Shown here: one piece after another, positions 9,412 through 33,818 of the stretch
Position numbering within the stretch: position 1 is the stretch's first letter
Layout of the letters: each line of letters starts with the position of its first letter
Notes under the pieces: generated by a model
The model's database searches: none
Told to the model about the DNA's origin: nothing
The model's input: the letters and a program-made list of their open reading frames with translations, nothing else
Assembly (NCBI GenBank): GCA_030704615.1
Contig: CM060732.1
Span: 72,168,001-72,232,000, forward strand
DNA length: 64,000 nucleotides
Source of the DNA: Takakia lepidozioides
Lineage: Eukaryota; Plantae; Bryophyta
Reading direction: 5' to 3'
Translations under genes and position numbers: made by a program

Positions 9412-9489
9412 TATAGGAAAGGTTTTGCTCATTTGGATCCTTCTCTTTACTACATTGGGAAAGTGTGGAATGGTTAAGTCTAGATTGAG

Positions 9490-9687
9490 GCACTTGCTTG
9501 TAGATAAGGAACCTTCAACAGGTTTTAGTTTCTTTCCACAAGGTAGCCCAGTGGTTGGGTGTTTGTGCCTTGCCTGTGCATAACTTAGGTGATCATGGGT
9601 TCAATCCTTTAACATGTGCTTTCAGACCATCCATTGGGCCCTTGATGGCCTGTGTGTTGAGCAGTAGGCTTTGTAAATTCATTGGAC
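9490..9687 (+). mobile_element. tRNA-derived SINE family A, copy 2 (head interrupted, 3' truncated)
   Basis: GCACTTG at 9490, a ~45-nt insertion, then AGGTAGCCCAGTGGTTGG..GGTTCAATCC..CATTGGAC. The tail is absent, cut at the junction with the large element. Confidence 0.8.
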
Positions 9688-9694
9688 CTTTTGA

Positions 9695-9907
9695 ACCTGG
9701 TATTAAGATATATAGAAAGCAAAGTTCGATAAAAAAATATAAGTGCATGTCAATCCAAATCAAAGGCAAAACCTTGCGCAAGTGAAGGGCGAAGAGATTT
9801 GAATAACCATAAATAATTATGATTATGGTATGGATACTTCATTCCCAGTATGATTATGGAAGTATAGTCATTGCATCGGACAAGTATTTAAATGAAAGAC
9901 TCGTCCT
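9695..9907 (-). repeat. Inverted, rearranged copy of the 25.4-27.0 kb repeat unit
   Basis: The reverse complement of 9695-9849 matches ~26025-26180, and that of 9853-9907 matches ~26182-26237. Confidence 0.85.
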
Positions 9908-9909
9908 TT

Positions 9910-11557
9910 TGGCAGGAGGGGTTTTCTTTCCATCCTTTAGAAAAACCTCACAAAGGTAACCGATGTCCAGAACCAGGACGTAGTATCCTGGTCGGCACCC
10001 GTTCGGTCCCCAAGGAAGGGAATGCAGATCGTTTGGATTGACAAAAAGGGAATAGTCGACTGGAGGGTAATGCATGTTGTCCTGTGGAATAACAGAAGAG
10101 TTCATTATTAATTTCAATTTCAGAAATTCCAAAGTAGACAAACGGAAGAATAGAGTTGAAATCATTACCGTTTTTTGGGGCGGCTGCTGAGATCCCTGGG
10201 CAGGCTACTCCTCATCTTTCCCATCTCTACGGCAAACGTTATCGTCCTTCTCTGTGGCATCAAATGGCAACCTCGACTGTCCAGTGGAGGTAACTTGTAT
10301 GACCGGCTCAGATTGAGCGACAGTGATTGTTCGATCCACTCTTCTCTTCACCGTCTCAGTGTCGATGGAGTCGGTCCTCGTGTGTTTGATCTCCTCAGAC
10401 GTCGTTTCACGAATCTACAGGAAATGAAAGAATCCCACGGATGAGGATTATGATGGTCCAAATTGATCCAACAAAATTATCGAATTGAGTAATATCGAAG
10501 ATGAGACTGAAAGACCAATAATATGAAATAAGAATAAAGCCAATGTTTTACCCGAATCGGGATCTGTTGTTGGATTACATGCTTGTGGTGCTCTGTCTCT
10601 TCTCCCTCCCAACGAGTAGGAGGATTCTTTGACTCATTCCCTGCAGATGGCAACGTCCACTGGACAATGGAGGTTACTTGTGGAACCGGATCAGGTGACC
10701 TGGACCTCACTGTCAGATCCATGTGTCTCTTCACCGTTTGAGTCTCCTTTGAGCCTTTTCTTGTGTGCGTCATTTCCTCCGATTGGGATTATTGGATCTA
10801 CAAGAAAAGTTATCCAAATCAGTTAGTGGTTGTCCACAAAGGTGTGCGAACGGAAATATGTGTGCGGGTGGAAATATGTTTTATTCGGAAATCCAGAAAA
10901 ATGGATATGGAAAAAACATTGGGATTATGTATAATTACAATATTGTCATATTGTATTCAGAAGTGTGTACGAATAAAAATTCACTAATTGTCATTCGTTA
11001 CCTACATCCAGAACCACTTCCTGGGTGACATTCTGGGATACCAGCTCACGACGATTGTTAACGGGATCCGCTGACATAATCAATGGCTCGTCACCTTCCA
11101 CAGGTGTGAAGCCTTGACTGAGGTTTCAACTAACTCCGTCGATGTCGCTTCTTGTCCCCCTGGAGAAGCCGGATTCTTATTCGTGCTGTTATCGGAACTG
11201 GAGGAAGAGTTGTCCAAATTGTGTACATCTTCTGGTGCAACGCGTTCTTGGGTATTTGGAGTACTACCTAGATTATCCAACCGGTATTTTTCCTGGCCCT
11301 CTCTTTCCCTTTCCCACATTAGCCGTATCTTCCTCTGGTCTCCGTCGACGATTTCCATGTTCTAATCTTCATCTTTCTCCTCCTCCTCGTCCTCTTCTTG
11401 TTTCTCCTCCATTTCCTCGTCCTGATCCTTGTCGTGTCCTTCTTCAACATCTTCTTTGTCCACTTCGTCATCCTGCAATGAGTCTACGTCATCTCCGTCT
11501 CCTGCGATAGTCTGATTGTCAATCTGGAGCGTCTTGAAATAGGCCTCCACCTTGCTT
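9910..11557 (-). pseudogene. Multi-exon acidic/low-complexity coding remnant of the large element (possibly the 3' part of the 14.8-18.1 kb gene)
   Basis: Acceptor TTTTGTAG near 11558. D/E-rich ORFs 11362-11550 and 11080-11358 are separated by one in-frame stop. Duplicated exon-like segments 10233-10400 and 10620-10760 each contain the element palindrome. Confidence 0.5.
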
Positions 11558-11659
11558 CTACAAAATTTAACAACAGATGTAAAATGCGTATGCCTTTCTA
11601 CGTTTGCTACTGTTCCAGGGCGACATCTTCAGAGCTGGAATTGCACCACAACAAATCAG

Positions 11660-12058
11660 CAGGATAGGGTGCACCCACATTTTACATGTACATGTCCACA
11701 AGGGTATTGTTCATAATGACATTTGGTAAAATTCCATATCTGACAATGTTGCCATGTTTCCAGAGCTGTCAGGCTTGCACATGCGTCGCAAATGCACAAA
11801 AATGTGATGTGGTCAGGCCTCACCCCTTCCCCCATCATTTGATCATAGGTCTCCAAAGCCTCCATACCACGTCCGGCCTGCTGTGCATACCCTGCAAGCA
11901 TCGCGTTCCATGACACCACATCTCGTTCAGCCATAGTGTTGAAAACTCCCTTCGCATCCTTAATGCACCCACATTTGGCATATATGTCACCAGGGCAGGG
12001 TTCAGAATGACATCAGGTACAATTCCAGCTTTGACGATGTCACCATGGACCTCTTTCT
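11660..12058 (-). pseudogene. PLS-class PPR gene fragment
   Basis: EVHGDIVKAGIVPDVIL..YAKCGCIKDAKGVFNTMAERDVVSWNAMLAGYAQ..EALETYDQMMGEGVRPDHITFLCICDACASL; frameshifted. Confidence 0.9.
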
Positions 12059-12901
12059 GGCCCTCTTGGATGAATCTGGACCCACACTCTATCCCTGCTC
12101 CTTCAGCTATCCATGCCTATGCATAAATCATGCATACATCCTTGCCTTGCTGCTAGCAGCTGACGATGACAGCCTACATTTATTCTAGGAAACACCCAAC
12201 TCAACTTATCACACTAGTTCATATGCTCAATTGCATCTGCTACTCTCTATAATCAGACAGACATTCACCTTCTTGCCTGGATTGTCCCACCATTGACTGG
12301 GTAAGAAAAGTATTCATTCCATAGCTTCTCCTCATCTCTGTTACATGTTTCTGGATGCTTTCCTGTTGTCACATTGGCAGTATCATGTCAAGTCACTCCA
12401 AACTATCAAAGATTCACTCAACCAGCTAGCATGCAAAATTCAACATGGAAATTTAGGGTCAATTCTGATAAGAAGGAAAAACAGGGTGAAATGTGTTGAA
12501 GAAGGTGCCTTCATTCGTAGTGCCTGATTTGTCAGTTCCACCGCTACTGCTGCAGCTTTCAATTGACCATCTATCCATGCAGGTTGCTAGTAGCTATTGA
12601 TCCACAGGGAATCATAGGACCTTGAAGTCCGGCCCTCTTCGATGAATCTGGACCCACACTCTATCCCTGCTCTTTCAGCTATCCATGCCTCTGCCAAAAT
12701 CATGCATTCACCCTTGCCTTGCTGCTAGCAGCTGATAATGAAAGCCTCGAATTGTTCTAGGAAACACCCAACTCAACTTATCACACTAGTTCCTATGCTC
12801 AATTGCATCTTCTACTCTCTGTAATCCAACAGGAATTCACATTTTTGCCTTGATTGTCCCACCGTTGACTGGGGTCAGAAAAGTATTCACTACAACAGAA
12901 C

Positions 12902-13780
12902 GCTCCCAGGCTTGTACACGCATTGCAAATACAAACAAATGTGATGCGGTTGGGCTTCAACCCTTCGCACAACATTTGCTCATAGGTCTCCAAAACATTC
13001 CTACCAACCCATGCTTGGTAAATCCTGCCAACATTATTTCCACATGATCAAAGATCGTTGAGGGATTATATTGAACACTTGGTGAGCATAGATGTACACC
13101 AAGGGAATGTTCAGAATGACATCTGGTACAATTCCAACTTCGATAATGTCACCATGAACCTCTTTGACCATTCCCAGGGCTGCTAAGCTCGCATATGCAT
13201 ATTATAAACACAAATGAACATGACCCGGTCTGCCTTCATCCCTTCCCACATCATTTGCTCTTAGGTTTCCAAAGCCTTAATCCCATACCCATGCTGCACA
13301 TACCTTGCAATCATGGCATTCCAAAACACCACATCTCGTTCAGCCATATTGTCGAACTCCCCCTTTGCATCAGGCTTGCTGCACCCACATTTGGCATACA
13401 TGTCCACCAGGGCAGTGTTCATAATGACATCTGGTACAAATTCAGCTTTGATGATGTCACCATGAACCTCTTTCCCCTTTCCTAGAGCTCCCAGGCTTAC
13501 ACACACATTGCAAACACAAACAAATGTAAAGTGGTTGGGCTTCTCCCTTTCGCACATCATTTGGTCATAGTTCTCAAAAGCCTCCATCCACGCTGTAACT
13601 GTGCATATCATGCAATCATCGCACTCCATGACACCCACATCTTGTTCAGGCATACTGTCAAACACTCCCTTCATACATGTCCACGAGGGTATTGTTAAGA
13701 ATGACATGTGGTATAATTGCAGCTCTGACAATGTCGCCATGGACCTCTTTGCCCTTCTCCAGAGCTGCCAGGCTTGCACA
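12902..13780 (-). pseudogene. PLS-class PPR gene fragments (about 3 degenerate triplets)
   Basis: ORFs 13261-13779 and 12799-12993: GKEVHGDIIKAEFVPDVIMNTALVDMYAKCG..FDNMAERDVVFWNAMIARYVQHGYG; frameshifts and deletions. Confidence 0.9.
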
Positions 13781-14789
13781 CACTACAAACTATCAAAGGT
13801 TCACTCAACCAGTAACTTACAGAAATTCAACCTGAAAATTTTTGGAACCCACAGGCTGCCAGCAGATGTAACAATCTCCTTAGTTCTTTCATGGGGGTTT
13901 TTTGTTATTCTACTTTAGGGCCGACTTTGATAAGAGGGGAAAATAGGGTGAAATGTGTTGAAGAAGGTTGCCTTCATTAGCAGTGCCTAATTTCAATTGT
14001 GTCGCTGCTGCTGCGGCTTCCAGTTCACCATCTACCCATGCAGGTTTCTTGTAGCAATGGATCCACAGGGAATCATAGGTAATCTTGTGCTTGAAATCCG
14101 GCCCTCTTCCAGCAAACACCCCAACCCTAATGATGAGAGGGCAAAATAGACTGAAACAGGTTGAAGAAAAGGTGCCCTCACCAATTTAGGGCCGATTCTG
14201 ATAAGAAGAGAAAACAGGGTGAAATGTGTTGAAGAAGGTGCCTTGAGTAGCAGTGCCAGATTTTATCAATTGTGCCGCTGCTGCGATTTCCACAACTGAA
14301 CTGGCAGAGATTGAAACGCAGTTTGCTAAGACCAAGCTGACTCTCCCAAGAACCTTGTAAACATTAGGAAGAATACCAAATCATAACAAGAGCCAAGAGC
14401 ACACATTTGCAGGATGGACTAACTTAGAACTTTACATGGTACATTAAGAAAATGCCACACCTTGTGATTGCGGTTGTCCCACCATCGTGAAGAAATTCAG
14501 GGCCGAGTCTGATGAGAGGTCAAAACAGGCTGAAATAGGTCGAAGAAGAAGGTGCCTCACCACATTGTCCTCGACCTTGTGTCATGACCCATGGAGGATT
14601 TGACTGACCATGAACACAATAGGACACAATAGTCACGTAGTCATTTCAACGACTACGTGAAGCCCCATTTGATCCAAAAATACAGGGAAGTCATGGTCAA
14701 AGTTAGAAAAACCATGACTACCACGGCTCGATATACCACGATCTGTTGTAGTGGAACTTCCACTGCCTAGTGGAGGTTAACAAAATGGA

Positions 14790-17700
14790 AACATTCAGAC
14801 ACAGGTTAAACACGCTATTCCGACAACATAAAAAATACGAGTTAAATCCGGCAAACTGAAAACACAGACAATTCCAAGATGCAGAATCCACTTACAAGCA
14901 GAACGTATATCATTGCCAGTCCTCCGAAAATGTTCACACAAGACATTCCATCCTTGCCAAAAAAAAAAAAACCAGGTAATCGTAGGTGTCCGCCCTCAGC
15001 TCATGAGTGTAAGTCCTGCACTCCTTCTCCTGCGAGGTCAGGTCTACATCTGGTCCTTGGATAACGGGATTAATTGGGTCCGGCGTTAACAAAACAGTTT
15101 GAATGTGATCGTCCGGATTCACCATCTCCTCATCTGTTGCCGGAAATACGTAGTCGAGGCAGAGGACCGTCCGGGAGAAAATAGTCGTGCAGCTCTTGTA
15201 AGGTGATTCAAACTCGCCGGGAATGTAATAACCCTGTAGGATAATAAACGATTTTGATCCAGGACCATTCCGGATGTATGACACAAGATTTCCCGATGAT
15301 TCTTGTGTCGAGAAAAACACAAATGCACTGGACATTAGCTTCTAAGCCACAAAAGCATCCAGGGTATTGGAGTAGTCTTTTGCCTCAAAGACAACAGAGT
15401 CATCATCACAAATTGTATTGACGAACACCATCGATATGTCGTCGAACCGTTTCTTCGGTGCAAGTCCCAACCGTGATCTGGCATCAGCAAATTTCTGGTT
15501 TCCCCCCAGCTGTGTGTAATCGGACCTGAAGCTCGTGCGTAGAATCGCCAGGGCATTCTGGTTATCCTCGAAGGTCTGCTTGCACGACAAGACATACTTC
15601 TTTAAGGCAGCTGTCATTGGCTGCGTCTCCATATTCATCTTCTGTTTGCTTACAATGTAGTCGTTCCCGAGCCGATCTCGAAAAATTCAAACTCAGCTTT
15701 GTTGAAGTTGTATTTTTTTTGTCACATCACGCCACTCCTGTTTGGTATACGGTTCCGGGTTCTGTTTGCTCCTCCGAGGCCACCCTAAGACTTCCATTAC
15801 ATTGTCGATAATAAACCATCGCAATTTCATTTGGTCAATATACTCGCTCATTGTGTTTTCGGATTTGTCCACGCCCTTGAATTTCGTTCCCCGAATGCAA
15901 ATGTCTCTGTTTAGAATTTTCTCCGCCACTCTTTTCAACTGCCTGCTATTAAGTCCTTGCAGTTTCGCGATAGCAGTTTTATTCAGCGGTAGCTGTTCAC
16001 CTTTGCACTGAATCTCGAAAATATCAATAAGCTTCCCTTGATCCCACTGTTTGAAAACCTCCTCCCACAGGTTCCATACGTGTTCGTCACAAAGAACCAG
16101 AACCATGGCCTCCTTCATGCTACTCATCTCCAATATGAGTTGACATGCTTGCATAAATTCTTGCGAAAATAATCAGGGCCAAAGTTCGACATTTCATTCG
16201 ATATTCGATATTAATTTTTGAGATGAAACAATAGTCACAACTATCATGTCAATTATAATATACTCCATGTAATGATTCGATTACCAATTCATCTCCGTCC
16301 ATCTTGTTGTGCCTTGTAATTTGAAGCTCTTTTTGTAGTGTCTCCTGCTTCGAAATGCGGTGCTCCTCCAAGTCAAATTTGTCCAATCTGTTCATGTTCG
16401 CCACCAGGAACAGTTCCAAGAGTGTATATAGAAAATCCTTGAAAAACCCAATGAGCATGAAAAGTTTTGGAAGCGTTCTCCGTAACATCACGTTTTCATG
16501 ATCATATGATGTTTCAAGTATTTTTGCGGCACAATTGCGGAACTGTTACAGGTGGAGAACATAAATAGATTGGGAAAATAAGAGCTGGACAAGCACCTCA
16601 TTACCAAACAAGACACATTACAAAAGACCCAATCATGTCGAATTTCCGAATGCTGAACCATCTTGCTCGTTCATTGTAGCACCCTCCCTTATGAAGCTAT
16701 GTTTGTAGTGTCTCATGCTTTGTAATGCGGTCTCTGTTTGTCCCATTAAATCCGAGCTTGAAAATATTTTGGTTCTCTAGCAAAAGGAACACAAAACTCA
16801 ATGAATCATTTACCTTCCATTGTCTAGTCTCCGACTTTGTTGTGTGATCGTTGTACTTTTTCGGCCTCCCCCTCAGCTCGAAGAAATTTCGGGCATGTGT
16901 AACTTTCTCGGGAAATGTTGTGTCAAATTTTTGCGCCTTATTCGGGTCGTTTAGGAGCTTAGATAGCTTCACGAGCCTCATCAAATCCTTTGACCATATA
17001 ATCTTTGAGGGCCAGTCAGTGTAGTACTTCTTAAGATTGTCGTCGTTCACGTCTTGCACAAGTTCCTGCGAAAGAATTGAATAAGGTCAGAAATGATATC
17101 GACCTAACAAACATGTTGTTTAAAGTTCATGAACCTCCACCTGACGAAGAATCTGGAATTTTCCACCTCCTTCCAGTTTCGAGGTTTCGAATTAGAAACC
17201 TCCATAGGCTTCTCGGGGTTTACGGGAATCAAATAAACTGGATGTTTGGAGTCGAACACCCGCAGCTGGTAAAGACGCGCTTTGACTTCGTCTTTGTGCT
17301 TCACATTTAGGGGCCTGTACACCATATCCGTGGGAGCAAGCTCCATCATGGCAACTTTGACGTCCTGAGTCGCCTCAAACCCAAAAAGAAACATGTCCTT
17401 GTAGTCTTGCTCCAGCCTCTCCAACATCTTCTCACACTTCTCTTTGTCGAATATGTCTGCAGCCCTGGGTTTCTTGTTATCTGTCATAAACGCGGGATCC
17501 ATCTCCTCTTTTTGTTTCTTCTTTCTCCCTGATGTCCCGGCTTCATTCTCATCACCACCGGCGTCAATGGATTTTCGTTTTCCCTTCTTTGGCCTCCCTC
17601 TTGAAGCCTCCTCCTCCCGGGTCTTTGCAATCTCCTTACTCTTTAGGTAAAGCACTTCCAAGAAAATACCCCAAGCCATGCAAATTCCTTCATCTGTAAA

Positions 17701-18135
17701 TTGAGTACCCTCGTCGCAATATGTGAACCCCGCCCTCATGGACTCTCTCATCATGGCCTTCCTTAGAATTCGTACCTCCAGTTTGAAGCCAAACATTCTG
17801 GGAAATCTACCATCTTCCATCATGAACATTACCAGCATCGGAAATTCCACCTCCATCTCCAGCTCTACGTCGACCACATCTGCATATTTGAGCTTGGCGA
17901 CCTTTGCACCAATCTTGTATTGGAACTGGAACTTATGGTCCGGAGGTGTGCCAACGGGTACAATGCCCCATTCTGTGATCTCCGGGTTGAGCTCAAAAAT
18001 TGCCAGGTGATCATTCTTGAAATTCGGAGATTTTCGGGAAACAAAAGAACCACAAATAGGTTTGCACATTCCAACAATACAATCCCTGGGGGTGATGTTG
18101 CTGTGCACAGAACAAACACCTCTGTCGTCAGACAC
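14790..18135 (-). pseudogene. Large multi-exon cargo gene: putative ParB/Srx-like region plus degenerate C-terminal methyltransferase-like fold
   Basis: Same-strand ORF chain 17104-18135, 16697-17059, 15693-16154, 15342-15638, 14934-15335 with GT-AG sites (acceptor ~17066, donors ~16813 and ~14896). Contains YRPLNVKHKDEVKARL..PVYLIP, and at the C-terminus ELRADTYDYL..FGKDGMSCVNIFGG (resembles MTase motif X-I). Domain calls are by resemblance only. Confidence 0.5.
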
Positions 18136-18423
18136 ATATCATAACAACCATACAAAACTCCCAGGATAGTAACCTCCACTGTCCAGTGGAGGTTCACCAC
18201 TTCACATGCTCATAGCTGACAGATAAAATAATCCAATTCAGGAGAAAAAAAAGATAGCACTCATAAGAAGAAAAAAACATTTATTCAGAGAAGGCTCGTC
18301 TCGCCATTCAATACATCATGCGGTCTCAAAATTGTTCGAATAACGAATACCCAATATCTACAAGAACTCGATATTCTTTTTTAAGATGAGGTTCATCTTT
18401 TCATTTTCTTATATCTACAATAA

Positions 18424-19019
18424 CTACAGGAGGCTCTCTCGAATCATCCTCAAGGTTTCAGGGGAGTACTCTCTAGGGGTATATGTCGGAGAATCTCCAG
18501 AGATGTAATCTGGAGAATGTCCATGGACGTACTGAGGAGAAGGGACATATTCTGGAGAATCAGCGGAGACATATTCTGGAGAATTTACAAGGACAGATAC
18601 TGCATACTGAGGAGGGTGAGGACTATATCCGGGAGTGGACGGAAGGACGGATCCCGGGTACTGTTCACTATCTCCTACAGAAATGTCATTATCTGAATCA
18701 GACTGAAGATTGCACTCATCACTTTCATCTTTCTCTTCCTCTGTTTCTTCCGCTGTCTCCCGTCGAATAAGTCCCTCGAACATTGATTCGTCAGTGCACA
18801 GAGTTATGAAGGTTTGCACGTCAGAGCCCACATCTGATATTTCATTCTCAAATCTCTTCTAGAAGGTTTTTGTTTTCGATACAACTAGTGATGCGTCTTG
18901 GTTTTCTGCTTCGTTGATGTTTACTGGATTCTGTCTCCTTGGCCTCTTACAGATGTCGACGACGATCTCAGAACCATCTTTGGCCACCGTGTGCACTCCT
19001 ACGCCCCTTCTTTTTATAC
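18424..19019 (-). pseudogene. Cargo ORF with acidic tract and SPxY/YSP repeats
   Basis: ORF 18424-18831 extends upstream through one TAG (~18859) to an acceptor at ~19019 (GVHTVAKDGSEIVVDICKRPRR). C-terminus GYSPHPPQY..SPEYVSADSPEYVPSPQYVHGHSPDYISGDSPTYTPREYSPE. Confidence 0.55.
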
Positions 19020-19533
19020 TGACAGAACAAAAAATCAACGCAAGGGAGGCATCGACATAAGTCTATCTCAATACATCCTTATGTTGTGCCTTGGCATAGT
19101 AACACGTAGGAACCTCCACTGGGCAGGCGAGGTTCGTGTGGTTTGTCCTGCCGGAGTTTATGGAGGTCTACTAGAGGTCTAGTGGTCTACGGAGACTAGT
19201 CTACTAGAGTAGCCTAGGCCTGAAGAAAAACCCGTTTTCAAATGTCGGAAATTCGGAAAAACAATCGCGAAAAACCATGATCCTAACCCGCCATAACCCT
19301 AATCCATAACCTAATAATCCAGCGCCGCATTCTCGGCCGAGTGTCATAGCTGCATGAATTCATGAAACGCTTGTCATCGGCGTCAGGCCTTCATCCACTT
19401 GGACAACATTGAATGCGAAATACGTACTGCTTCATAAGCACGAGTGCGAAACCATTGAACCACCATTATCGTTCTGGCATTATGATTGTTACATAGGGAT
19501 CTACCAGTAAAGGACATTTTTTTCCGAAATCGG

Positions 19534-19845
19534 TCAAAGAGTACACTCCTGCACCATCCAGAACCGTTCGATTGTGGCCATATCGGATATCAACGGGCGA
19601 CGGAAATCGATCCGCGAGACAATGTATCGCACTATCCCATTGGAGGAGTTCCAGCGGGCAACCTGGTTTCCACCTCTATATAAGTCTGAGTGCAAACTGT
19701 TCAAACTTCTATCTCCAAACCTCTCACTTGCAGATTGTGTTTCCCGCACCTCTCTGATCATCTCCCACCTCACTTCCCAGAGTGCACCTCTCTGAGCATC
19801 CTGTACCTCTGTGGCCATCGCAGGTGTACCTCTCTGAACTTCCAT
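19534..19845 (-). CDS. Small hypothetical cargo ORF (possibly an upstream exon of the 18.4-19.0 kb gene)
   Basis: 103-aa ATG-initiated ORF between palindrome copies; no recognisable motif. Confidence 0.25.
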   Translation of the reverse strand: MEVQRGTPAMATEVQDAQRGALWEVRWEMIREVRETQSASERFGDRSLNSLHSDLYRGGNQVARWNSSNGIVRYIVSRIDFRRPLISDMATIERFWMVQECTL

Positions 19846-20375
19846 AATCTCTCATGTGAACTGCATTTTTTCTCCTGTACAAAATGTTATGACATCTGTG
19901 TGTTTTCGGTACTCTACAGGAAAATCTACTTATTTCTCATCTGCATGTTTAGAAGTTACAGTCCAATACTCTTCAATTTCTATATTTCGTCATACCTCAA
20001 GTTGTGGACCTCCACTGGATAGTCGAGTCAATGCTCACATTCATCCGTCATTACCATTATTCATCCACGTAACCATGTTCATCCACTAGTATTCATCCGT
20101 CCGACTTTTTTCATTATTATCTCATCCAACCTCCACTGTACAGTGGAGGTTATATAATTAGACACAATCTTCATATGACATGTTCCAGACCAAACAGTAA
20201 TTCCATTTCTATTCTATTCTCTGAAACGTTCATACGCGAGTGTATTTCCTTTTATTGTATTGATTCATCTCTGAATATAGTCTTAACTCATACTACTTAT
20301 GACTGTAAGTAAGGTCGTCACGAAGGGGTTTTCAGTTTCTTGAACCTCGCGTGTGGAGTGGAGGTTCAGGTGATC

Positions 20376-23300
20376 ATGAGCTTAGAGACGGGTCAAAGAG
20401 TGTTTCTTACTCTTCCCGGGTCTTCATCTCCAGTAGCCACTGGGGACTGCCTTAATGTCTCCGGGGTTGGGACCTGTCATGGACACCAATTATCTTCCTC
20501 AACCATTTCAGTGGTTCTCATCTCCTGTGATGAAGCACACTCATTATGTCCTCTTCCTTATGGACATATGGATGCTGACACCTTGAAAAGAGGCAATTGG
20601 GACACCGGTGGTGTGGAAGGTTGGCGAAGTTCATGCAGGGAATAACGAGTATCAAGGAGGGCCTGACATGAATCCTGATTTTATGCCGGAGACAAGGGAT
20701 ACTGCCGAGAATTCTGACGTCGACGAGGATGAATCAAACCACAGACCATCGAAGAGTTCCGGGAATCCGAGAGGAGGACTCGGAAGAAACAACTGGAGAA
20801 ACTTGCAGTGCGTACTGTTGGGTGATGATGGGGGTACACTGTTCGAGGGGAGGATTCAAGCCTGCATTCCGGACGAGGTGATCCTCAATGACAAACTGGG
20901 AGAGGACGATGTTGGAGTTCTTGTCACCAGAATACTTTTTGGAGGTTCTGGATCTTTGATGTCTCTTGTAAAATGGCCTTTAACAAAAACACGACTTTTG
21001 GAAGGTGGGAGACTACTCTCAAATGATGTGGAGAATTTTATTAGATCCTCCGACAGCATATTGTACGAAGATCACGAGGCAAGTGTGAAGAAAACGGCAT
21101 ATAGGCATTTTACGAGGAAGAAGATGGATTGAGATTTGGATCACTCCAAAAAAAGAATGAAGAATCTTACTCTGGAGGAAATCCGGTCCGTGAGCAGCAA
21201 ACCTTGCTGCAGACTTCACTGCTGTCAATATTTTTGTCGCGGCCCTTTGCCTTGAGGGCAGGGGGTCGGGACACATGAGGGGCTGCCCCTGTGGTGGGGG
21301 CAGCGGCAGCGATAGGTATTGGGGGGCTGAAGCACCCTTGAGTGCCCAAGGCACTCAAGGAGGCGGAGGCGCTCACTAGGTGGAGCCCCGCACACCGGGT
21401 TGCGGTGGGGGTGGCTCCACAAGGGGTGGTGGTAGCTTAGTGGGACTTAGTGGGGGTGGCATAGGACTCACCATGGGGGCGGAGGCCTCGTGGTGGGAGT
21501 CGTGGGGAGTCTTGGGACTCATCACGGTCCATAGGGGCCGTGGTGAGCGGGCCAAGACTCACCGCGACTCATCACCGGGAGTCGAGGGTTTTCGTGGTGG
21601 TTCGCCATAAAATGGCATGGCTGGTTGTGGAACCCCCGTGGACAGCTACAGAAGTATATATAGGGAGTAGTAACCCCGAGAACAGTGCAAGCCCGTTGGT
21701 GACCAAAAACTAGTGAGTAAGCGAGCGAGCCGGAAAGCGACCAAAGAGTGGGGAGCTGTTCCGGACTGCCATCTACCAAAGGGAATTCTCCTAGTCCCAA
21801 TTAGGTGGAGGGTTTAGAGGGAAGCGAAGGGGGGACCGTTATGTCCCGGTGAGCAGCCGAAGCTCCAAGTTGGCCCGGGCGGCCAGGTTGGGAGTCAGGC
21901 GCGCGCATCAAAGCGAGTAACTATGACTTGAAGGGGAGCTTACAGAAGTGAGGTGTGCGACAATTTTGCTTGGCGAAAAACCTTGGCTATCCGTACGTCG
22001 TTTTGGGGATCCACTTTCGATGAGAGGAGAGAACACGGACTAAATGTTTCAAAACGACTTCACATGCTGGAAGGGACCTCTCGCAGGGCATACGTTACGA
22101 TTGGGGGTGTGGATGTTTGTGAGATTGCTTGGTGGAAAATTCCTGGAATCGGCAGGTCCACATACATGGAGTACAAAAAGTTGAGTAAACAAGATTGATT
22201 GTCAAGTCTCCATGGGAACCGTGGAGTGAAGAGGCCACGCCCAAGGACGCTTCAGACAGAGGGTAACATTATGTCCATTATCAACGGAAATACTGACCTC
22301 ATGCCCCATAAGACAAGATGCATTGGGGAGGGAAGGATGGATACTTTGAGAGTCTTACCACCTGAAATGAACTGGAAGCGAATATGAGACGAGTCCAACA
22401 AGGTATGAAATCTCCATTCTTCAATTTCTTTCCTGGAAGTCTTTTCTAATTCAATTTGGATGATCCTCCCTTCGATTTTGTCTCTTTCGACTGTGGTTGT
22501 AGCTTCATGAACCTCCACTGTCCAGTGGACGTTCTTTTCCTGACCATGCCTTATTGTAACAGTCCAACAGACTATTCGGGTTGGAAGGAGTCTCGCAATC
22601 GGCTGTTAGCCACATCCGGAGTCCGATATTTCCTAACGTGGAGGTTCGTAAAACTGGGAGTACATTTGCGAAGTGCACGGAGTGTGAGATGTTAAAGGAC
22701 CTGATCAGAAAGTTTCTAAAGAGAAGTGCGGAATAGGTGACACACAAACGAGCTCTTGATAAACATTTGAGGCACCAAGAGTCGTGTAGAAGACTGTACC
22801 ATAGCTGGAGGAATGAGTCTGTTATGATTCCGGAGGAGTTTCTCTGTGTTATTCATGACAAAAATGGATCATAGGAAAACAGCTATTCCAAGGCTACAGA
22901 CTCCAAACAAGATGATTTCTGGATTGGGTCAGCTTCCAGTTTCACTAACGGGAATGGTCACGCACGGACACGGTGATGGAGCTTACAAACAGTACTCTCT
23001 TGAGTTCTGGAAGGGAAATTCAAACTTTACAATTGGTTCTTTGGCCCGTTGCCTGCGTCAGCTGGAGAAGCCAACCTGTCGCGATGCACCTTCCTGAATA
23101 GTTTGTAGACAAACCATCTTCCATTGATAGACTCTTGCAAGCTAAAGCAAAGAAATAAAACATTTTCGATTGCCGACTTCAAAACGAGTTTTTCGAATCA
23201 CGGAAGAGAGGTAAATCGAGATGTTTGGATGCTCTGAAACTCTGCAGGCCGGAAGACAAACGTGGTGCTCGTCCACTTCTGAAAAGACTGTACTTGCAAA

Positions 23301-24589
23301 TGGATAACTCCGCGAAGGACAATAAGAACAGATAGATGCTTGTTTTTCTATCCCTCCTGACCGCCAAAGATGTTTTTGAAGAAATCCAACTAGGGTTCCT
23401 AATGGTCGGACACACCCATGAGGACATCGATGGGTTCTTCAGCTACCTTTCGAAGAAGCTAAAGGAACGAAACACCTACATTCTTTCGGATTTGATGAGG
23501 TCTTTTATGACCTCGCAAGATCTGCAGTTCATTCCACAGATTATTCAGGAGGTTCCCGACTTCAAGAATTTTGTCAAGGGCTGTATTCTGGATGGAAAGG
23601 AGGCGTTGGTCGGGATTTCGGAGATGCATGTCTTCCGTTTTTTTAAGGATGCCGAGGGCTGGCCCGTCATGAAGTACAAGAAGTCCGCTACTGATTCGGA
23701 TTGGCTTCCAACAAACAATAGCGTGAAGATGTGGAAGTCCAATCCTGACGGGACTCCCAAGCTCCATGAAGGAGACCCAGACGCCGTGCCAAGGAGACCT
23801 ATCTGGGGAGTCGGGGACGACTCCTCCGAAAAACAGTCATTCATTAAGAATGGAATAAAAAAATACAGGGATTTTTGGACGAAAGGAATGATGCTTGACG
23901 ATCATTACAGAGGTCGAATGGAACAATACGACCAGTACTGGGGAAACATTCTCGCCGAGCTGGATAAACCAATTCCAAAATCTCCCGAGCGTATTCAGCT
24001 TCTTGAGGGATTCTGGCCGAAAACAAATTGGTCCAAGAATCATCACAGAGATGGAATTCATCCACATGTAGTGCCAGATGTGGAAGAAGAGGATGAAATC
24101 CTAGAACCTTACTGTGGCCCGAGGTGTGAGCGACCAAGAATATCCCTGAATCCGTTCAAGGAGAAAGGGTTCTTTGTGCTCGTTCACCCTCATGACCCAA
24201 GTACGTGCCCGGTCTGGATGGGGGTGGCAATATCTGACGTGATCCGCGAAAGGGAGGATCCTAATTTTAAGAAGGTGAAGGTGGAGTGGTGGAGACCGAG
24301 AAAAGGTGGTAACCCAACAGACTTGGAAAGGTACAGGGACTGTTGGTCAAAACTTTGGGAGTATAACTCGACAGATCCTCCTCAATGGATCCACGTGAAC
24401 AATGTTGTGTGGACAATGCCTCCACGGAAAAATACGACAAGGAATAGCATTAAGAGAATTACTGCCGCCGAAGCAGTGAAGGCGCGCGCTAATTTGGAGG
24501 AGGCTAATCGTCAGTCAGAAAGCGAGTCGTGCGAGCGAGTTCTAGACCAAGGACATATTGTTGAGGTCAACTCCAGTACTTCGATTTAA
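20376..24589 (+). pseudogene. Sola-like (DUF7869) DDD/RNase H-fold transposase, disrupted by a solo LTR, stops and frameshifts
   Basis: N-terminal Tnp1/En-Spm-like repeats (VATG..CHGHQL..LPYG..TL-K-EAIGTPVVW after a frameshift), then CCRLHCCQYF|AWRKTLAIRTSFW (rejoined across the LTR), IHDKMD, HGHG, LYLQMDNSAKDNKN and FLMVGHTHEDIDGFFS. Intron donor AAG|GTATGA at ~22403. Confidence 0.8.
21235..21962. mobile_element. Solo LTR (728 bp) inserted in the transposase
   Basis: TGTCGC..GCGACA termini, 5-bp TSD ATTTT (21230-21234, 21963-21967), internal TATATATA at ~21655. Removing it restores the transposase frame. Confidence 0.92.
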
Positions 24590-24677
24590 GAAATAATTTT
24601 TTTCTTCTCTATATGGCCCTTCTTGTTTGCGTTGGGGGATCATTTTTGCAATCTTCTTATGTCGCACTAAACCTATA

Positions 24678-27468
24678 ATGTCTAGTGGACGTTCTCGTCC
24701 TTTGTTTCTGGTTTGCTGGATTCTGGCCTGCTGTACGTCCTGGTCAACAAAGAATACCCTGTGGGGGAGTTTCGCCTACATAACATATAGATCACAAGAA
24801 CAAAATGGGCGGGCACGACCACTGGAGTCTTCAAATTCGGTCAAAGAGGTTTTTAACAATGAAAGAAAATAGCCTATTTCCAGTCCTTCTCTGAAACATT
24901 AGACTTGTTTTTTGCATAACCAATTCTCCCACTGAAGTCTCCTACTAGGAGGAGCCTTACTCAATTGTTGTTGACATACTTTTCAATTTGCCAGTCCTGA
25001 AATTTTTTCTCTGAGGCTTTCCTCCATTTTCCCTCTAAGCTCTACAACTTTTCTGGACCAAATTTTCATTTCATTTCATTTTCATACTTCTCATCGTTGG
25101 CCCTGGTTTAAGAGGGAATTTCGCATGTCCATTTCCGTTGTTCAAATTTTAAGCAATTTTTATTTCTCATAGTTTTTATTTGGTGGTTTGACTTTTTATC
25201 CTCTCTCATGTTTTCTTCAGATCCATTTTCTCCCATGAGATCCAGGCGCTTCCCAAAAGTCGTTATATAACGTCATTTTCTTTCCAAATCTCATAGCGTG
25301 TTTTTTTTTTTTTTTTTTTAAATCTAGGATTTAGGATTGACATACTTTTTTTTATAGTACCTTGTTTTTTTTGTTAGCATTACCTCTAACCCTTACCCTT
25401 TTGTACAAATGGCCCATGAACTATTCATACCATAACCATAGCCATAACCATAACCATTATGGTTATTGAAATGTCTTCTCCCTTCACATTTGCGCTAGCT
25501 TTTTCTTTTGTTTTGGATTGACATGCATTTAGGCATGTTACAGTTTGCTTTCTATGTTACATCTTAATACTAGGTCCAGGTTCCAACGACGAGTCTTTCA
25601 TTTAAATACTTGTCCATAATATTAGGTTCTTCATTTTTTTTTTGCTTACTAATACCCTACTAACAACACTAAGTTCTAGCGAAGTCTGGAGTTTTCCATA
25701 AGTGTTTGTCTATTTTGTAACTTAAACAAAAACCCTAAATATTTACCCTTAACCCAATACCCCAGAACCCTTTCCCTTCCCTTTGCAAATGAGAATCAAC
25801 TATCCATACCATAACCATAACCATTTTAGTTATCCAAATCTCTTCAATGTAACCAAATTTCCATTTTGTACCATACTAACACACACTAAGTTGTAGCGAG
25901 TGCGAGTCTTCCGGCATGTATGCTCACCATTTTTGCCTTCAACCCAAATCCTAAACCCTCGTAGAAAACCCTAAGAAAAACCCTACGCCATTGTTACGTC
26001 TAAACCCTTACCCTTCTCTTGCAACTGGGAATGAAGTATCCATATCATAACCATAACTATTTATGGTTATTCAAATCTCTTCGCCCTTCATCTTGCGCAA
26101 GGTTTTGCCTTTGGTTTGGATTGACATGCACTTACATTTTTTATCGAACTTTGCTTTCTATGTAACTTAATACCAGGTTCCAAGGATGAGTCTTTCATTT
26201 AAATACTTGTCCGATGCAATGACTACACTTCCATAATATTAGGTTCTTCATATTTATTTTGCTTAGTACGACCTTACTAACAACACTAAGTTGTAGCGAG
26301 TGCGAGTCTTCCGGCATGTATGCTCACCAGTTCTGCCTTGAACCCAAACCCTAAACCCTTGTCGGGAACCCTAAACAAAACCCTACATCATTGTTACGTC
26401 TAAACCCTTACCTTTCCCCTGCAAATGGGAAATGAAGTATCCATACCATAACCATATGTATCTTAATACCAGGTTCCAAGGACGAATCCTCAATCTAAAT
26501 ACTTCTCCGGCCCAATGACTCTTCCATAATATTTGTTTCTCCATTTTTTTATTTTTTTATTATCCTACTAACACACACCAAGTTCTAGCGACTGTGAGTC
26601 TTCCATATTTGTTTGTCCAATAGTTTTTTAAACCCAAACCGAAAACCTACCTTTACCATCACCCCTAAGCCATTAATCTTACCATAAACCAATAACTTTA
26701 GTGTACTACCCTAGTTACACTCAAAACCTTATTGTATTACCATGTTACATCTTCTCAATGTTTCATGCTCTTTTAATATTTTCTTTTGTTGGATAAGGTA
26801 TGATAGAATGATTACAGGGATATCAAATTCCTCAACCATTTCTTAATTCTACCGAGTGTGAGTCCATCATATTTGTTTGTCTTTTTGTACCCTAAATCCA
26901 AACCCTAAACCATTACCCTTACTGTAAACCCAAACCTTATTACACTTCTCTCTAGTTACACCCCAAACCTTATTGTACTACCCTAGTACCTCTTCCGAAT
27001 GTTTCATGCTATTCTAGTATTTTACTGCCTTGTCAGATCCAAAACATGATTCATTCCAATGGTGTGGTATGTGAACATTGTGCTTCATCATGTCGTATGA
27101 AGATTGTATCATTTGCTCAAGCAATCTGCACCCAAATTACCGAATGGGACAAAATCAACCTCCTGTGTTCTTGAAACCACTCCTTAAAGTATGGCAGAGT
27201 TCTGAAGGTTTTTACAATCAGAGTAACACTCTGCTAATTGATGATACGGCTTTGAAGTGTTTGCTGAACCCTCCTAAATCTTGTCTTCTTCTCAAGTCTT
27301 TTGAGAACATTGACGTCAACGATTTCTTCCTTCTCAAATTTAGATTTCTTGGTTAGCTTCTTGAAATTTGAGAACGTCTCAAGCTTCTTGAAAGCAAGGA
27401 GAATATGATTTCCACCTTTCAAAATTAACGATCCACAGTTCAAGCCTCTTCTTGACTATATTGACTGA
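24678..27468 (+). pseudogene. FCP1/NIF-like HAD-fold domain gene, split by a long repeat-rich intron
   Basis: 3' exon LCFIMSYEDC..PVFLKPLLKVW..YNQSNTLLIDDTALKCLLNP matches the NTLLIDDSPxKxxxNP motif of FCP1-homology proteins. Putative 5' exon RPLFLV-LDSGLL (frameshifted) resembles LLVLDLNGLL. The 5' exon assignment is weaker. Confidence 0.6.
25380..27030. repeat. Degenerate complex tandem repeat (units ~220-400 bp) with telo-box-like AAACCCTA motifs
   Basis: TACTAACA..CTAAGTT.TAGCGA recurs at ~25658, 25874, 26276 and 26566. CCATAACCATAA runs and several AAACCCTA(A) copies are present. Confidence 0.85.
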
Positions 27469-27484
27469 GCACGTGAAGGCTTAC

Positions 27485-28959
27485 CCGTGCCGCATGTGAG
27501 GTCCAGAATCCGCCCTTGGACATCCGAGCACGTCTCCATGAGGGTTTGGATGAAAGCAGGGCTCCGGGTCCGGCTGTACCGCCACGGTTTGCCTGTCTTT
27601 GTGTCCTTCGGGATACTGGAGTGGGGCACATAGTTGTAGAGGACATCGTAGGTAACAGGGTCCATAGCGGCATCAACAAGACGACCGTCGTTGCGGAATT
27701 TGAACGTAGACCCTCTCTTCACAAAGCAATATGCCTCAAACACCAATGTCTGCACATCCAACAAAAGAGGGATCAACTCCGGGATCTTGTTTAGATACAC
27801 CACAATATGAGGTGAATGCAATAGATTGATAACTTACACTTTGGCCCTCTGTTCGCAACCCCTGTGTATTGATGCAGAACCATTTTCTGAGGAGGACCGG
27901 GGTGACATTTTTCGGTGTCCACCTTGCCACCGCATTCTCTGTGGTCTTCCCTCTTGTGGCAAGGACAACCACACATCCACCGTCATCCAGAAGCATCCCC
28001 GCCAGCCCAAACCCGGCTTTCCAGTAGTCCTCAATAAACCTGTTCCAGGTGGGCACACCATCCAGGCCCTCCAGCAGCTCCCCATCTGGAATGTCGAGGA
28101 GAATCATGTCGCAAGCTCTCTCCACCTCAACCCCCCCCCCCGGAGTGCTCTTGCAATCCGTGCTCACAGCCGTGAAGAATTCCATCATGGCTTCAAATCC
28201 AGAGGTGTCTTTAGGCTCTGTACCGGCAGCCCTCTTCTTGGCTTTCCCCTTCTGCTCCGCCAGAGACTTGCTGTGTGCCACCTTCTTCGCCCTGGCAGCG
28301 AGAGCGTCAAGGAAGCTCTCATTGACGCATTGGATGATGGTTGGAGGTTCTAGCTTTGGCCTGTGCGTAAACGTCACCGCCGAATACCGCCGTGTAGGCT
28401 CGCCCTCAAATGCCAACTTCTTGGCAGAGCCAGTCCCACTCCGAACTAACTTGGGAACCCGGACGACCGGTGACTGGGTAGCAGCAACAGCAGTCGCAGG
28501 ACTTTGAACAAAGTCGTCGTCCGAGTCACTCTCTTGGGTCCCCTCCTGCGCCTCCTCCGATGCCCCGATGGTTTTCTGTTTTTTGGGTGTTACTGCACTC
28601 ACCTGTTTCCTTGTCCTTTTCCTTTGGCCTTTACTCTTCTCATTCAATTTCTCCTGAATTCCTGCCTGAGCAAGCTCTGCCACTTTCCTGGAGTTCGCAA
28701 GCGCTTTTGCCTCTTTTGCACCCAACAGAGGCAGCGGAGCCTGCTTTCGTCGGGCCTAGCATCCAGGTTCAATTGAAACTCGGATGGGTCGAGCGAGCCG
28801 GGCGGAAGGTCCACATACCAAGGGCAATCACGTTCCAGATGCCACTCCTTCACAATATCGTCAGTGTACATGGAGTCAGCCCCAGGGTTCCTCCATGCCA
28901 GGAAGAATGGTGGCTCGAAAGACATATGACCTTTCTCCAAAAGGGAGAACTTGCAGTAC
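27485..28959 (-). pseudogene. Beta-class DNA amino-methyltransferase (N4-C/N6-A) homolog, spliced, 5' and 3' incomplete
   Basis: Exons ~28959-27838 (one frameshift near 28750) and 27749-27485 with canonical GT-AG. Motif IV-like CDMILLDIPDG (DIPD at 28084-28095), LLDDGGCVVV, then motif X-I RSPAFIQTLMETCSDVQGRILDLTCGTG, which is beta-class order. Confidence 0.72.
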
Positions 28960-28987
28960 CTGCATTCATGAAAAACACAATGAGGTC

Positions 28988-29551
28988 CCTGAACTGCAAA
29001 TTCGGCACCATTTTCCCAGGTTGGGGCGGATCTGAGTGGGCCTAGAAATGGAAAAATGGCGCTGAATTTCGGTTTTCGGTGACTGCCACCCTAGGGACTT
29101 AGCCATCTTGGGAGCCCTGAACTGGAAATTCGGCGCCATTTTTCCTGGTTTGGCCCGAAGATGGCTAAGTCCCAGAACGGCAATAGGGCCTAGAAATGGA
29201 AAAATGGCGCCGAATTTCGGTTTTCGGTGACTGCCACCCTAGGGACTTAGCCATCTTGGGAGCCCTGAACTGGAAATTCGGCGCCATTTTTCCCGGTTTG
29301 GCCCGAAGATGGTTAAGTCCCAGAATGGCAATAGGGCCTAGAACCGGAAAAATGGCGCCGAATTTCCAGTTCAGGGCCAGCCACCCTAGGGACAGCCATT
29401 TTCGGAGCCTTGACTGGAAATTCGGCGCCATTTTCCCAGGTCCGGCCCGAAAATGGCTATGTCCCAGAACGGCAATAGGGCCCAGAACTGGAAAAATGGC
29501 GCCGAATTTCCAGTTCAGGGCCAGCCACCCTAGGGACTTAGCCATTTTCGG
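28988..29551. repeat. ~145-148 bp tandem array (~4 units) of alternating inverted AAATTCGGCGCCATTTT motifs
   Basis: GGAAATTCGGCGCC at ~29124, 29272 and 29416, alternating with AAAAATGGCGCCGAATTT. A second inverted pair is GGGACTTAGCCAT/ATGGCTAAGTCCC. Confidence 0.92.
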
Positions 29552-32500
29552 CTCTGCTTCTGTTTACTGTTCAAAGATAGTCTTCCTGCCCTGACTTTAA
29601 ATTTAGGTCTGGTGCCAAGAGTAGGATAGACCCTTGAGCGCATCTTCACAATCAATTTTAAATAGTAAATTGTGTCCACAGTAGGACGCGAATATTTACT
29701 TATCATTTACTCGGAAATCACGATATTATATGAGATTCAATCAATAAAATTACTAGCAAGTTGTATCGAGTATGGTAGAGTACGAGTTTGGCCCATGTTC
29801 GATGCGACCCATTTGGAATTTTACTTTATTCGACTTCCAAGTGGATGTTCAATGAATTGTTCAATACTGCTACTTCACATTGAGCACTTCAATGTCAAAT
29901 GGACCTCTTATATGACACATTTTGAAACAAGTATGACATCACCTGAAATTTCACAAAGTTCAATCACACATTACACCATGATATTATTAATATTTCAATT
30001 AATTTTAATACAAATATATATTAAGTTTAGTCCAGATTTAAGCCAAAAGTCCAGAATTAATTAAAATTGTGTTGTGTATTGATTTTTGTCCAAGGAAAAT
30101 GTTCAATTTTTACGTCAGTTTACTGGAACTTTTTTTTCCTCACTCCTCTTGCATGATTGTATGTCTTTTGTGTCTTTAAGGAGATACAGAAGAGTATTGA
30201 AATTTTTCTTTTGTGATTTACATATTATTTCAGGTATATGTCCTTTGGAGCCGGTGTAACAGAGGTAGAAGTGGACATCCTCACAAACAATATGAGAAAG
30301 GCTTGAAATGTTTTGCTCGAATTTCAAAGAATTAGGCATTGTTGTCCCATTATAGTTTCTGAGCAATTGTACTGCCAAAATTGAAAAATTCTCAAAATGC
30401 GTTAGGCACTTTGAATTTGAATTAATTATTGCCTAATGGGCTATAGAGGTACGCTACTCAAATGCAGACACTTGACAACAACACTTGGCTACAACATCAG
30501 ACATCCTTGAGAGACATTAATACACGATAAAATATATATATATATACTTAAAAAAAATACTAGGGATGGCCCGCAAAACACAATTCTAGACAAATATGGA
30601 GTAACATGCAGTACCGCTATGTACACCACTCTGTACCACTATAGATGGGTGGGCTACTCGGATAAATACAATTCTTGAGAAGTTGAGGAGATTCATCTCT
30701 TTGGCAACCACGATGATTATGACCTGGAATTTAATGTCTAGTTGGTAGTTGACTACCACAGACGAACCATGATTTCTCACATATCTTACCACCACATCCA
30801 AATAGACTCTAATATTGCTTATATATATGGAAGAATAAGATTATACAATATATGAAGCATTACGCTTCGTGGCAGATAATCGTGGCTTTGAAAGCAATTC
30901 CACTTGAATAATCTTTTCAAAATTGAATCCCGCCCATCAGCTATACTAAGTTTCCCGTTGGAGACATCTAGATACAATGCTATATCTAGGACTATCTCCA
31001 GAAAACTTATACGTGTAACAATAGAAAAACTTGTGCACTCGCGTGCAAATTCCCCACACCCTTCTTTACCACCACAGAATTATTGCTTACCCATTCATAC
31101 TACTCCAACCCAATCACATGCCCACTTGGATTTATAAGCTAATATTCTAGCTTATGCTAATACAAATATCAAGATCTAAACTTGACACCTGAAACATCTT
31201 GTCCTCACGCTCGTCAAACGTGTGGCTCATCTCTCTCGAGTTGAGTCTGCACGATCGAGCTCGCTCTCTCTTTGGCGTATGCGTGTACCTATGGGATGAG
31301 GATAGGTTGTTCTGAGGTGGATTCCCCATAGCTAAGGTACCGCATTTTTTTTTAATTTTAATTTTTAAAGAAAGAAACTTGGGAGCGACAGCCCACAATT
31401 TAGGCCCAATTCGAGCTTAACTTATTTACAAGTGATTTAGTTTTTATGTAAATATGAATATGAATGTGAGTGTGTCTCTCTTAGTTTAGATTCATTATAG
31501 CAGACTAGTTTGTGTGTATGCAGTTTGTGTACATGCATGCATATGTTGTGTGGGTTGTGTAGCGACGTGTATGTGCACAACACTTAATTTCACATCCCAC
31601 GTATGTTTTATCCAAAGCCCACTGCAGTTTGAGTTTTTTTTTTCTTTACGAATCCCCATAATGCATTGATAAAGCTAGAATGTGAGGCTTACAATGTGGA
31701 TTATCATTCCCTAACCAAGTCACCAAAGAAGAGAACTCAAACATATGCAAACATTTTTCCCTTTAAGAAAAATACAAACTATAAAAAAAATACAATCGTG
31801 AACCGTGTCCACTCTTGAAATGCGCAAGGTACTTTCCTCGAATCCTTTATAAAATCGGAGTAGACTCATACGGCGTCGTTATGGAATATAACGAGCTCTG
31901 TTGCAAATATAATTATGGGCAGAAAAATCTAGTCATATAGAGATCTTGCAACATAATATAAATATACATTGACATATAATTCGTCTTTTGGCCCGTGTAT
32001 AGCATAGTTTTAGACCCTCAATCCCCCTGTTTTGTGGCCAACCCGTCAACGAGGGACACAAATAACAAAGCATGTTGACGGCAAAGAAATGAACTAAGTA
32101 AAAAACTTAGCAGCTTGCATACAAAGCCTCCCTGGAGCCTCCCTCCTCCTGGCCCTACCGCGACCTCTCTCCTCTTGCTGCCCCGCTAGTGCCTATCGTG
32201 ACCTCCCTCCTCCTCCTCCTGCCGCCAGCCTCTACCGCCAACACTTCGTAACATCTGCAGCCTCTGGTACAACGGTGAGTCACTACGTAGGTATAGTATT
32301 GGCAGGACCGGCTCCATCTAGAATGTTCTGCATTCTAGAGCATTCTAGAATTCTCCCCCTATTCAATAGGCACCCATGTGGGGCCCATCCCCTTACCACA
32401 TGCTCTAGAATGCAGCCCGCCACATCTTTTCGGACAGCCTCTACGTGTCCGTTGGGCTTTCGCTGATTTTATTTTTTGAACGATTGGGGCACATATTTCG

Positions 32501-33190: not shown

Positions 33191-33818
33191 TGTCACGGAC
33201 ATAGCCCAGAAGAACTTACCAGGAGTAAATACCAGAAGTTATCAAGTTACCATGACTTACCGTGATTTACCATGATCTACCATGATTTACCTTCCAAGTT
33301 ACCGGGAGTTTATCAAATTACCCAGAGTAACTTGGGAAACTACTCATGAAGCTTCATTTTGAGGAAACTTCTCCATCAAGATACCTCATTTGTTTAAGGA
33401 AGCTTCTCCATCAAGAAACCTTTGTTTAATCTTGGAAACTTTTCCAACAAGAAACCTCCATAGGGGAAGCTTCTTGGGGAAACTTCTTAGTAGCCAGTAT
33501 ATATAAGAGGCGAGACTGGACACTTTTCAGTCTCGCCAACACTAGTTCAAGCTACTCTTGTTTCCAGTTCTCAGTACTCCAGTCCAATTCCCAGTACTCT
33601 AGCCTAGTTTCCAGTATATGGTACTCCAGTCCAGTTTTCAGCATTCCAGTATTCAAGTCGTGTTCCAATATCTTGTACTCTTGTTCATTGTTATAAAGAT
33701 CATCTTGATTCTTATTTACTCATCGAGCATACGGCCACGCTGACCTTGACTTCTTGTCTAGTCTTGTACCTCTCATCTGATCTCTTGTTTGTGTTCAGTG
33801 ATGTTCTCGTCCTTGAAA
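33191..33818 (+). repeat. 5' LTR
   Basis: Colinear with 39005-39625 apart from small indels; TATATATAA at 33498. Confidence 0.95.

Follow-up and report, generated by a model that had tools for sequence, protein, structure and literature searches.

The means by which plant transposons escape methylation silencing are understood for few systems only, and accessory genes of the ParB/amino-MTase kind have been noted in algal transposons only in passing. A 64,000-nucleotide stretch of Takakia lepidozioides DNA, referred to here as the window, raises the question of whether such a system also exists in land plants, as one interval of it had been read from the letters alone as a giant Sola-like transposon with a prokaryote-style DNA-modification module. 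The reading favoured here, whose two parts are jointly given a probability of about 0.6, is that the interval holds a dead, left-truncated member of a family of large, Sola-like DDD transposons found in land plants, and that it represents a VANC-like self-recognition element, by analogy with VANDAL, to which pieces were added later at this locus. The element spans about 9690-30072, roughly 14 kb after subtraction of nested pieces (Table 1), and its core unit consists of a DUF7869 transposase, a divergent accessory gene, a NIF/FCP1-like fragment, an ORF of SPxY repeats and nine palindromes.

Table 1. Features of the element and of the pieces nested in it (window positions)
Feature	Position	Strand	Remarks
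Inverted and rearranged counterpart of the internal repeat 26024-26237	9690-9908	-	Leftmost recognisable element DNA; no terminus
Family palindrome (24 bp)	10269-10292; further copies at 10652, 14755, 18171, 19111, 20128, 20343, 22510, 24670	.	Non-coding
Decayed acidic, low-complexity ORF	11000-11628	-	Only composition-level match to relatives
Rearranged host-type PPR gene debris with internal duplications	11650-14560	-	CpG o/e 0.3 vs ~0.8
Divergent accessory gene (pseudogene)	14851-18138	-	N-terminal and middle exons share homology with the ParB-motif/MTase fusion gene of Riccia and Calypogeia
Pol II CTD-like ORF: an acidic stretch plus five SPxY units	18427-18858	-	No counterpart in the fetched relatives
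DUF7869 (Sola-like, DDD-type) transposase pseudogene	20587-24589	+	Pfam E 1e-24
GC-rich nested insertion breaking the transposase	~21241-21949 (~710 bp)	.	Ends approximate, without clear TSD
Array of degenerate ~400-bp repeats, AT-rich	25380-27023	.	Belongs to the element
C-terminal fragment of NIF/FCP1-like HAD gene	27075-27353	+	Pfam E 0.008; z 16.6 vs the NIF gene of Calypogeia L021
Piece from within a separate and far more abundant ParB-motif/beta-MTase gene	27465-29732	-	Upstream exons and last exon absent
Beta-class amino-MTase-like exons	28962-27838, 27749-27483	-	Match the family profile at E 1e-12 and 1e-14
Intron of the MTase fragment	27750-27837	-	88 nt, GT-AG
74/148-bp tandem repeats	28987-29551		Part of the MTase fragment
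Right terminal region	29733-30072	+	Adjoins 27088 directly in other copies; last base uncertain, 30071-30076

The transposase, whose presence in the interval is confirmed by Pfam, is of the cut-and-paste type. Its reading frame contains no fewer than five premature stops, shifts at ~22862 and is interrupted by the ~710-bp insert. The motifs IHDxMD, QxDN and GHTHEDxD are kept both in the window and in its homologues, and an intron at ~22403-22562 contains one of the palindromes. The closest homologues (40-45% identity) sit on plant-like metagenome contigs; named relatives occur in the liverworts Calypogeia fissa and Riccia sorocarpa, and more distant ones in animals. DUF7869 goes unnamed in the literature searched.

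The limits of the element differ from those first proposed, 9690-29551. On the left, an unrelated, dispersed repeat of ~150 bp (9541-9690) adjoins the inverted copy of an internal-type repeat, so that 9690 is a repeat junction and not a terminus; the shared inverted repeat itself (9690-9908 against 26024-26237) had been described correctly. On the right, the element reaches ~30072-30120, and a motif at 30049-30072 is common to the termini of twelve related loci (L001, L002, L007-L016). A left TIR partner of this motif was not found in the window, nor was a TSD or a TIR pair at the window element, the left end of which is missing. One relative, L007, has an imperfect TIR pair of ~26 bp, with no TSD evident on its short and perhaps chimeric metagenome contig.

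Whether the genes between these limits belong together can be judged from other genomes; for spliced models, each exon was searched separately. In Riccia, two loci on two chromosomes (L006 and L020), 87-92% identical over 13.6 kb, both carry DUF7869 and a divergent long gene with the motif ISGQHS and a C-terminal match to PF01555; a third (L019) has a related fusion gene and a NIF gene downstream of the transposase, and in Calypogeia (L021) a divergent fusion gene is followed by a NIF gene. Pfam supports both domains in these relatives (N6_N4_Mtase, PF01555, E 2e-4; NIF, E 6e-7), and hhalign gives the MTase domain a probability of 91.7. Direct homologue searches with the left gene of the window were blank; three of its exons nonetheless have colinear matches in the Riccia and Calypogeia fusion genes (z 10.1, 9.5 and 7.8-9.0), and an opposite-strand accessory gene thereby co-occurs with the transposase in the window and at L006, L020 and L021. 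Judged by sequence, the family carries a long ParB-motif fusion gene, with a beta-class MTase-like domain in relatives, and a NIF/HAD gene. The cargo genes are not single-copy host genes, which had been named as the alternative. Recurrence is established in those other genomes, and within the same genome it depends on contig depth. A NIF gene at L004 and fusion genes at L002 and L007 were rejected as cargo because small DUF7869 elements end just before them; such small elements insert into the cargo genes of other elements at these three loci.

The proposal that the left gene is itself a ParB-like/MTase fusion survives for its N-terminal and middle exons, which are homologous to the fusion gene of relatives, and not for its MTase half or for a ParB fold. 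Its C-terminal part has no significant match to any MTase by profile comparison or alignment scoring; a colinear alignment by eye to the Riccia MTase, with the stop and the frameshift read as X, scored z 0.2 and was discarded as not significant. No clear ParB motif is present in the window's left gene, and the putative domain has no match in Pfam, NCBIfam, PHROG, PADLOC or PDB, its low-confidence model likewise having no fold match; the putative ParB-like identity is read from the GQHS and GNHR motifs of relatives. The acidic ORF at the far left is possibly the tail exon of this gene, to judge by its position.

Two further proposed cargo genes were borne out. The CTD-like ORF does hold its SPxY units, and no counterpart was found in the fetched relatives. 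The NIF/FCP1-like fragment, which lacks the N-terminal half of the gene, matches both Pfam and the Calypogeia gene, and some but not all family copies have this gene; in place of the catalytic motif DxDx(T/V) of FCP1/SCP (NIF) phosphatases, relatives read DLN or DMN.

The right-hand MTase, by contrast with the claim of one equally decayed gene set, has another origin. Contigs of four public runs were mapped to positions 24550-30500, the stretch to which all depth data refer. Summed contig depth, which does not equal copy number, is about ten- to twenty-fold that of the flanks over ~27465-29730 in runs X7 and X2 (in X7, 168-780 vs 9-39), and contigs from three runs (two samples) connect 27085/27088 straight to 29733. 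The skipping contigs and the depth step together indicate other copies of the element without the NIF fragment and the MTase, and the step indicates that the MTase and its 74/148-bp repeats come from a far more abundant element. Depth is near background beyond ~30120, a drop from which the DUF7869 element is taken to continue to about 30072. In run X8, which we guess to be RNA, a contig connects 27838-28136 with 27483-27749, leaves out the intron between them and extends a further 204 nt, while a second stops at the acceptor 28962 and then continues through another 385 nt. What the window has is accordingly a pair of internal exons from a longer gene, and this one run suggests that other copies of that gene are transcribed. 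Part of a second ParB-motif/MTase gene and the PPR debris, a nested or captured passenger that fits a land-plant host, were added later at this locus, and the window copy is both dead and composite. The spliced beta-class amino-MTase of the sequence-only reading stands in so far as both exons match the family profile, and it is foreign here; likewise, the multi-gene cargo transposon family is upheld by the same unit at unlinked Riccia and Calypogeia loci, minus its headline amino-MTase.

It could be argued from these additions that the whole interval is a pile of unrelated nested repeats. This is true in part, as the MTase fragment, the PPR debris and the insert at 21.2 kb testify, and cargo genes of other elements do serve as landing sites for small DUF7869 elements. 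However, one palindrome family covers the left gene, the SPxY ORF and the transposase, and the arrangement recurs in two liverworts; the pile-up is largely refuted for the core at 10.2-24.7 kb and, as an account of the interval, is very improbable.

What the MTase could do depends on its family. Direct homologue searches with the MTase exon were blank, and a profile of two sequences, the window exon and its homologue at L002, retrieved 122 proteins, a few of them spurious. Compared with phage beta-class amino-MTases, the family gives an alignment of 201 columns (hhalign P 94.7, E 6e-8), and its ESM Atlas neighbours are PF01555 (N6_N4_Mtase) clusters at 0.93-0.94. The structure model is reliable for the first half only and gives weak MTase-type matches (CcrM, E 0.3; best Z 6.5). 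The beta-class motif order, IV ... X, I with the SAM-binding motif, is found in the right fragment and in the family, which also retains the SAM-binding end and a conserved PxWN throughout. The canonical (D/N/S)PP(Y/F/W), sought anywhere in the sequence, occurs in 2 of 73 family rows; the window reads DIPD, the clade of the right fragment has DxPE or DxPD at the DPPY position, and Riccia and Calypogeia have DLT or DFS. The right-hand MTase is, as far as sequence can tell, of beta-class build without the catalytic motif, and because this motif is missing in 71 of 73 rows, catalysis is doubtful.

The family includes two Ceratodon purpureus proteins (KAG0605740 and KAG0624017). Their gene copies are 98-99.8% identical over at least 15 kb, lie on different chromosomes and are divergent from the adjacent transposase, which has what we read, with no Pfam hit, as Mutator-type motifs; an unannotated upstream exon of the fusion gene bears EGNHR. 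No similarity is detectable between the liverwort and the Ceratodon-type MTase domains (E 0.13), which indicates at least two accessory lineages.

It has been proposed for the Ectocarpus element (PMC12477816) that such an element modifies itself. Applied here, the fusion protein would load at the palindromes as ParB does at parS and write 4mC or 6mA on its own element, thereby blocking 5mC silencing or marking the element for transposition. The alignment of the whole beta-class domain with phage enzymes, the Atlas neighbours, the preserved SAM end and PxWN, the intact twin copies in Ceratodon and the spliced contig in a probable RNA run would all fit. Nevertheless, DPPY is replaced in the ways given above, and the palindromes occur in DUF7869 elements without an accessory gene while none was found in the Ceratodon MULE with the fusion gene; active self-modification is therefore considered unlikely, and the DNA modification suggested from the letters doubtful.

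The palindromes are the most distinctive part of the element. As had been claimed, they are confined to the interval: nine copies within 5 mismatches all lie within 10269-24693, seven of them within 3 mismatches where 0.00 are expected, and a weak extra one was seen near 20009. Dispersed palindromes of 20-24 bp are present in 8 of 8 DUF7869 families examined (the window, L001, L002/L004, L003, L005, L006/L019/L020, L007/L008 and L021). Those of L001, L002 and L007 are mutually related and the others are private, the window motif matching no other locus. In the four elements scored for this they avoid coding sequence (0/9 in the window, p 0.003; 0/29 in L021; 0/15 in L020; 1/9 in L001), and in each lineage they spread across promoters, introns and gene ends, with one in a conserved transposase intron in most families.

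Their occurrence in small elements without cargo, together with the negative result in Ceratodon, points to the transposase as their reader. It might accordingly be supposed that they are sites of the transposase only, serving the transpososome or activation, and that the cargo genes have no part at those sites, being passengers that large elements exchange: the palindromes track DUF7869 in all eight families, cargo or not, and are absent from L017 and L018, related fusion genes adjoin different transposases in both orientations, and transposases can activate cognate copies sequence-specifically (bioRxiv 10.64898/2026.08.24.746577). Yet recent copies in distant lineages keep their cargo ORFs intact and spliced, as selection would lead one to expect, and palindromes fill the cargo-gene introns of L021, while elements without cargo could be served in trans. 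The passenger account is accordingly rated somewhat below even self-modification.

In the favoured, VANC-like reading, the palindromes would be candidate binding sites for an element-encoded protein, the transposase and/or the fusion protein, by which the element would tell its own copies from host DNA and keep them active or free from silencing, in the manner of VANC on VANDAL elements. Owing to the loss of DPPY and of the second HAD aspartate, the MTase-like and HAD-like domains may serve mainly as binding or scaffold modules, or may perform altered chemistry. A bolder and improbable extension is that seed-free land plants would harbour such transposon-borne self-recognition as a widespread class: a ParB-like clamp fused to a non-canonical amino-MTase would read the lineage-private palindrome, a CTD-phosphatase-like decoy and the Pol II CTD-like ORF would help, only the element's own copies would be marked (4mC/6mA) or activated, and the cassette would move between Sola-like and Mutator-like transposases. 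Being dead and composite, the window copy is itself a poor model; Ceratodon, a transformable moss, as well as Riccia and Calypogeia have near-intact, recently duplicated copies, and with a specific candidate binding site for each DUF7869 family, both self-recognition and self-methylation become testable.

Among known systems, the Sola superfamily has a DDD transposase, a 4-bp TSD and TIRs, and is known in Physcomitrium (PMC10741241). By its description it shares with the present element three conserved acidic motifs, large size and presence in bryophytes, whereas the 4-bp TSD and the TIR pair are not seen in the window copy. The view of Sola elements as simple transposase carriers is outdated, as some exceed 15 kb. 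As beta-class amino-MTases (PF01555; CcrM, DpnA) do, the transposon MTase has motif IV before motif I, and it matches phage enzymes over the full profile; it differs in lacking (D/N/S)PP(Y/F/W), in being borne by an element and in its fusion to a long N-terminal region. Eukaryotic beta-class examples are MpDN4MT1 and the rotifer N4CMT (bioRxiv 2021.02.12.428880; PMC8885841), and compared by motif, MpDN4MT1 has a canonical TSPPY (bioRxiv 2021.02.12.428880), unlike the transposon family.

VANDAL elements likewise combine an accessory gene with family-specific motifs concentrated in non-coding parts, and the motifs targeted by VANC evolve fast and differ between lineages (PMC5735166); the transposase and the accessory protein are different here, and the palindromes measure 20-24 bp as against oriented motifs of 9 bp. 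The nearest counterpart, noted in 2025, is algal: PMC12477816 describes Sola1-1_Ec32 of Ectocarpus as a giant (21.5 kb) Sola1 with an opposite-strand ParB/N4C-N6A-MTase gene, and cites similar accessory proteins in green and red algae (via Iyer 2011; Petroll 2025). Likened through that description, both are giant Sola-type elements with an opposite-strand accessory gene (in the land plants ParB-like by motif and MTase-like in relatives), nested insertions and a proposed self-binding and self-modification. The land-plant element has in addition the NIF/HAD gene and the SPxY ORF, lineage-private palindromes, of which the description of the Ectocarpus element makes no mention, and a non-canonical motif IV. 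The element is a land-plant variant of an already described type of transposon, probably a VANDAL-like self-recognition system: the algal ParB/amino-MTase transposon is known, and what is added here is the land-plant setting, the NIF and SPxY cargo and the private palindromes.

The cleanest example of the cargo unit is that of Calypogeia fissa, in which the transposase is accompanied by a divergent fusion gene (ParB-motif/MTase) and a NIF gene (NIF/FCP1-like), and one palindrome occurs at this locus in 29 copies, all of them in introns and intergenic DNA. In the Riccia elements (L006, L019 and L020), a further conserved ORF with a duplicated domain lies downstream of the transposase (e.g., L020:12835-13738). 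Another DUF7869 element, at L003:12504-14665, carries a palindrome of its own, and the multi-exon gene lying downstream is a different one; no match to the window's cargo was seen. Small cargo-less DUF7869 elements at four loci have an end in common, which contains a hairpin and is succeeded by GGCAT; several of them sit within or adjoining the NIF and ParB-motif/MTase cargo genes of other elements, which hints that they target related elements.

In the window, a nearly duplicated 9-10-bp word (27094-27103 and 29729-29737) brackets the segment missing from other copies, whose deletion or capture it may have mediated. One of three dispersed repeat copies forms the apparent left edge of the noted interval. 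The PPR debris carries internal duplications as well as a repeated ~100-bp unit (at 12450, 13914, 14183 and 14494), and is strongly CpG-depleted. Elsewhere, a small element contains many subterminal repeats that are CCGG-rich, and the direct-repeat pair probably delimits an LTR retrotransposon.

Features in the window and comparison loci
Feature	Position	Remark
Dispersed repeat, ~150-185 bp, three copies	window 2418-2600, 9541-9690, 44818-45002	
Small element	window 7906-9417	30-bp terminal inverted repeats
PPR-gene debris	window 11650-14560	within accessory-gene region
Direct-repeat pair, ~630 bp, 86%	window 33191-39626	encloses long ORFs
End of small cargo-less DUF7869 element	L002:8318, L004:7564, L007:9766, L008:8691	
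DUF7869 cargo unit	L021:14-11407	Calypogeia fissa
Element copy	L017:1132-16035	Ceratodon purpureus chr 9
Element copy	L018:1-16095	Ceratodon purpureus chr 3

The two Ceratodon purpureus copies, each >15 kb and 98-99.8% identical, combine a Mutator-type transposase with a divergently oriented ParB-motif/MTase gene, which is seemingly intact and whose first exon is absent from the annotation. This element is a good model for tests.
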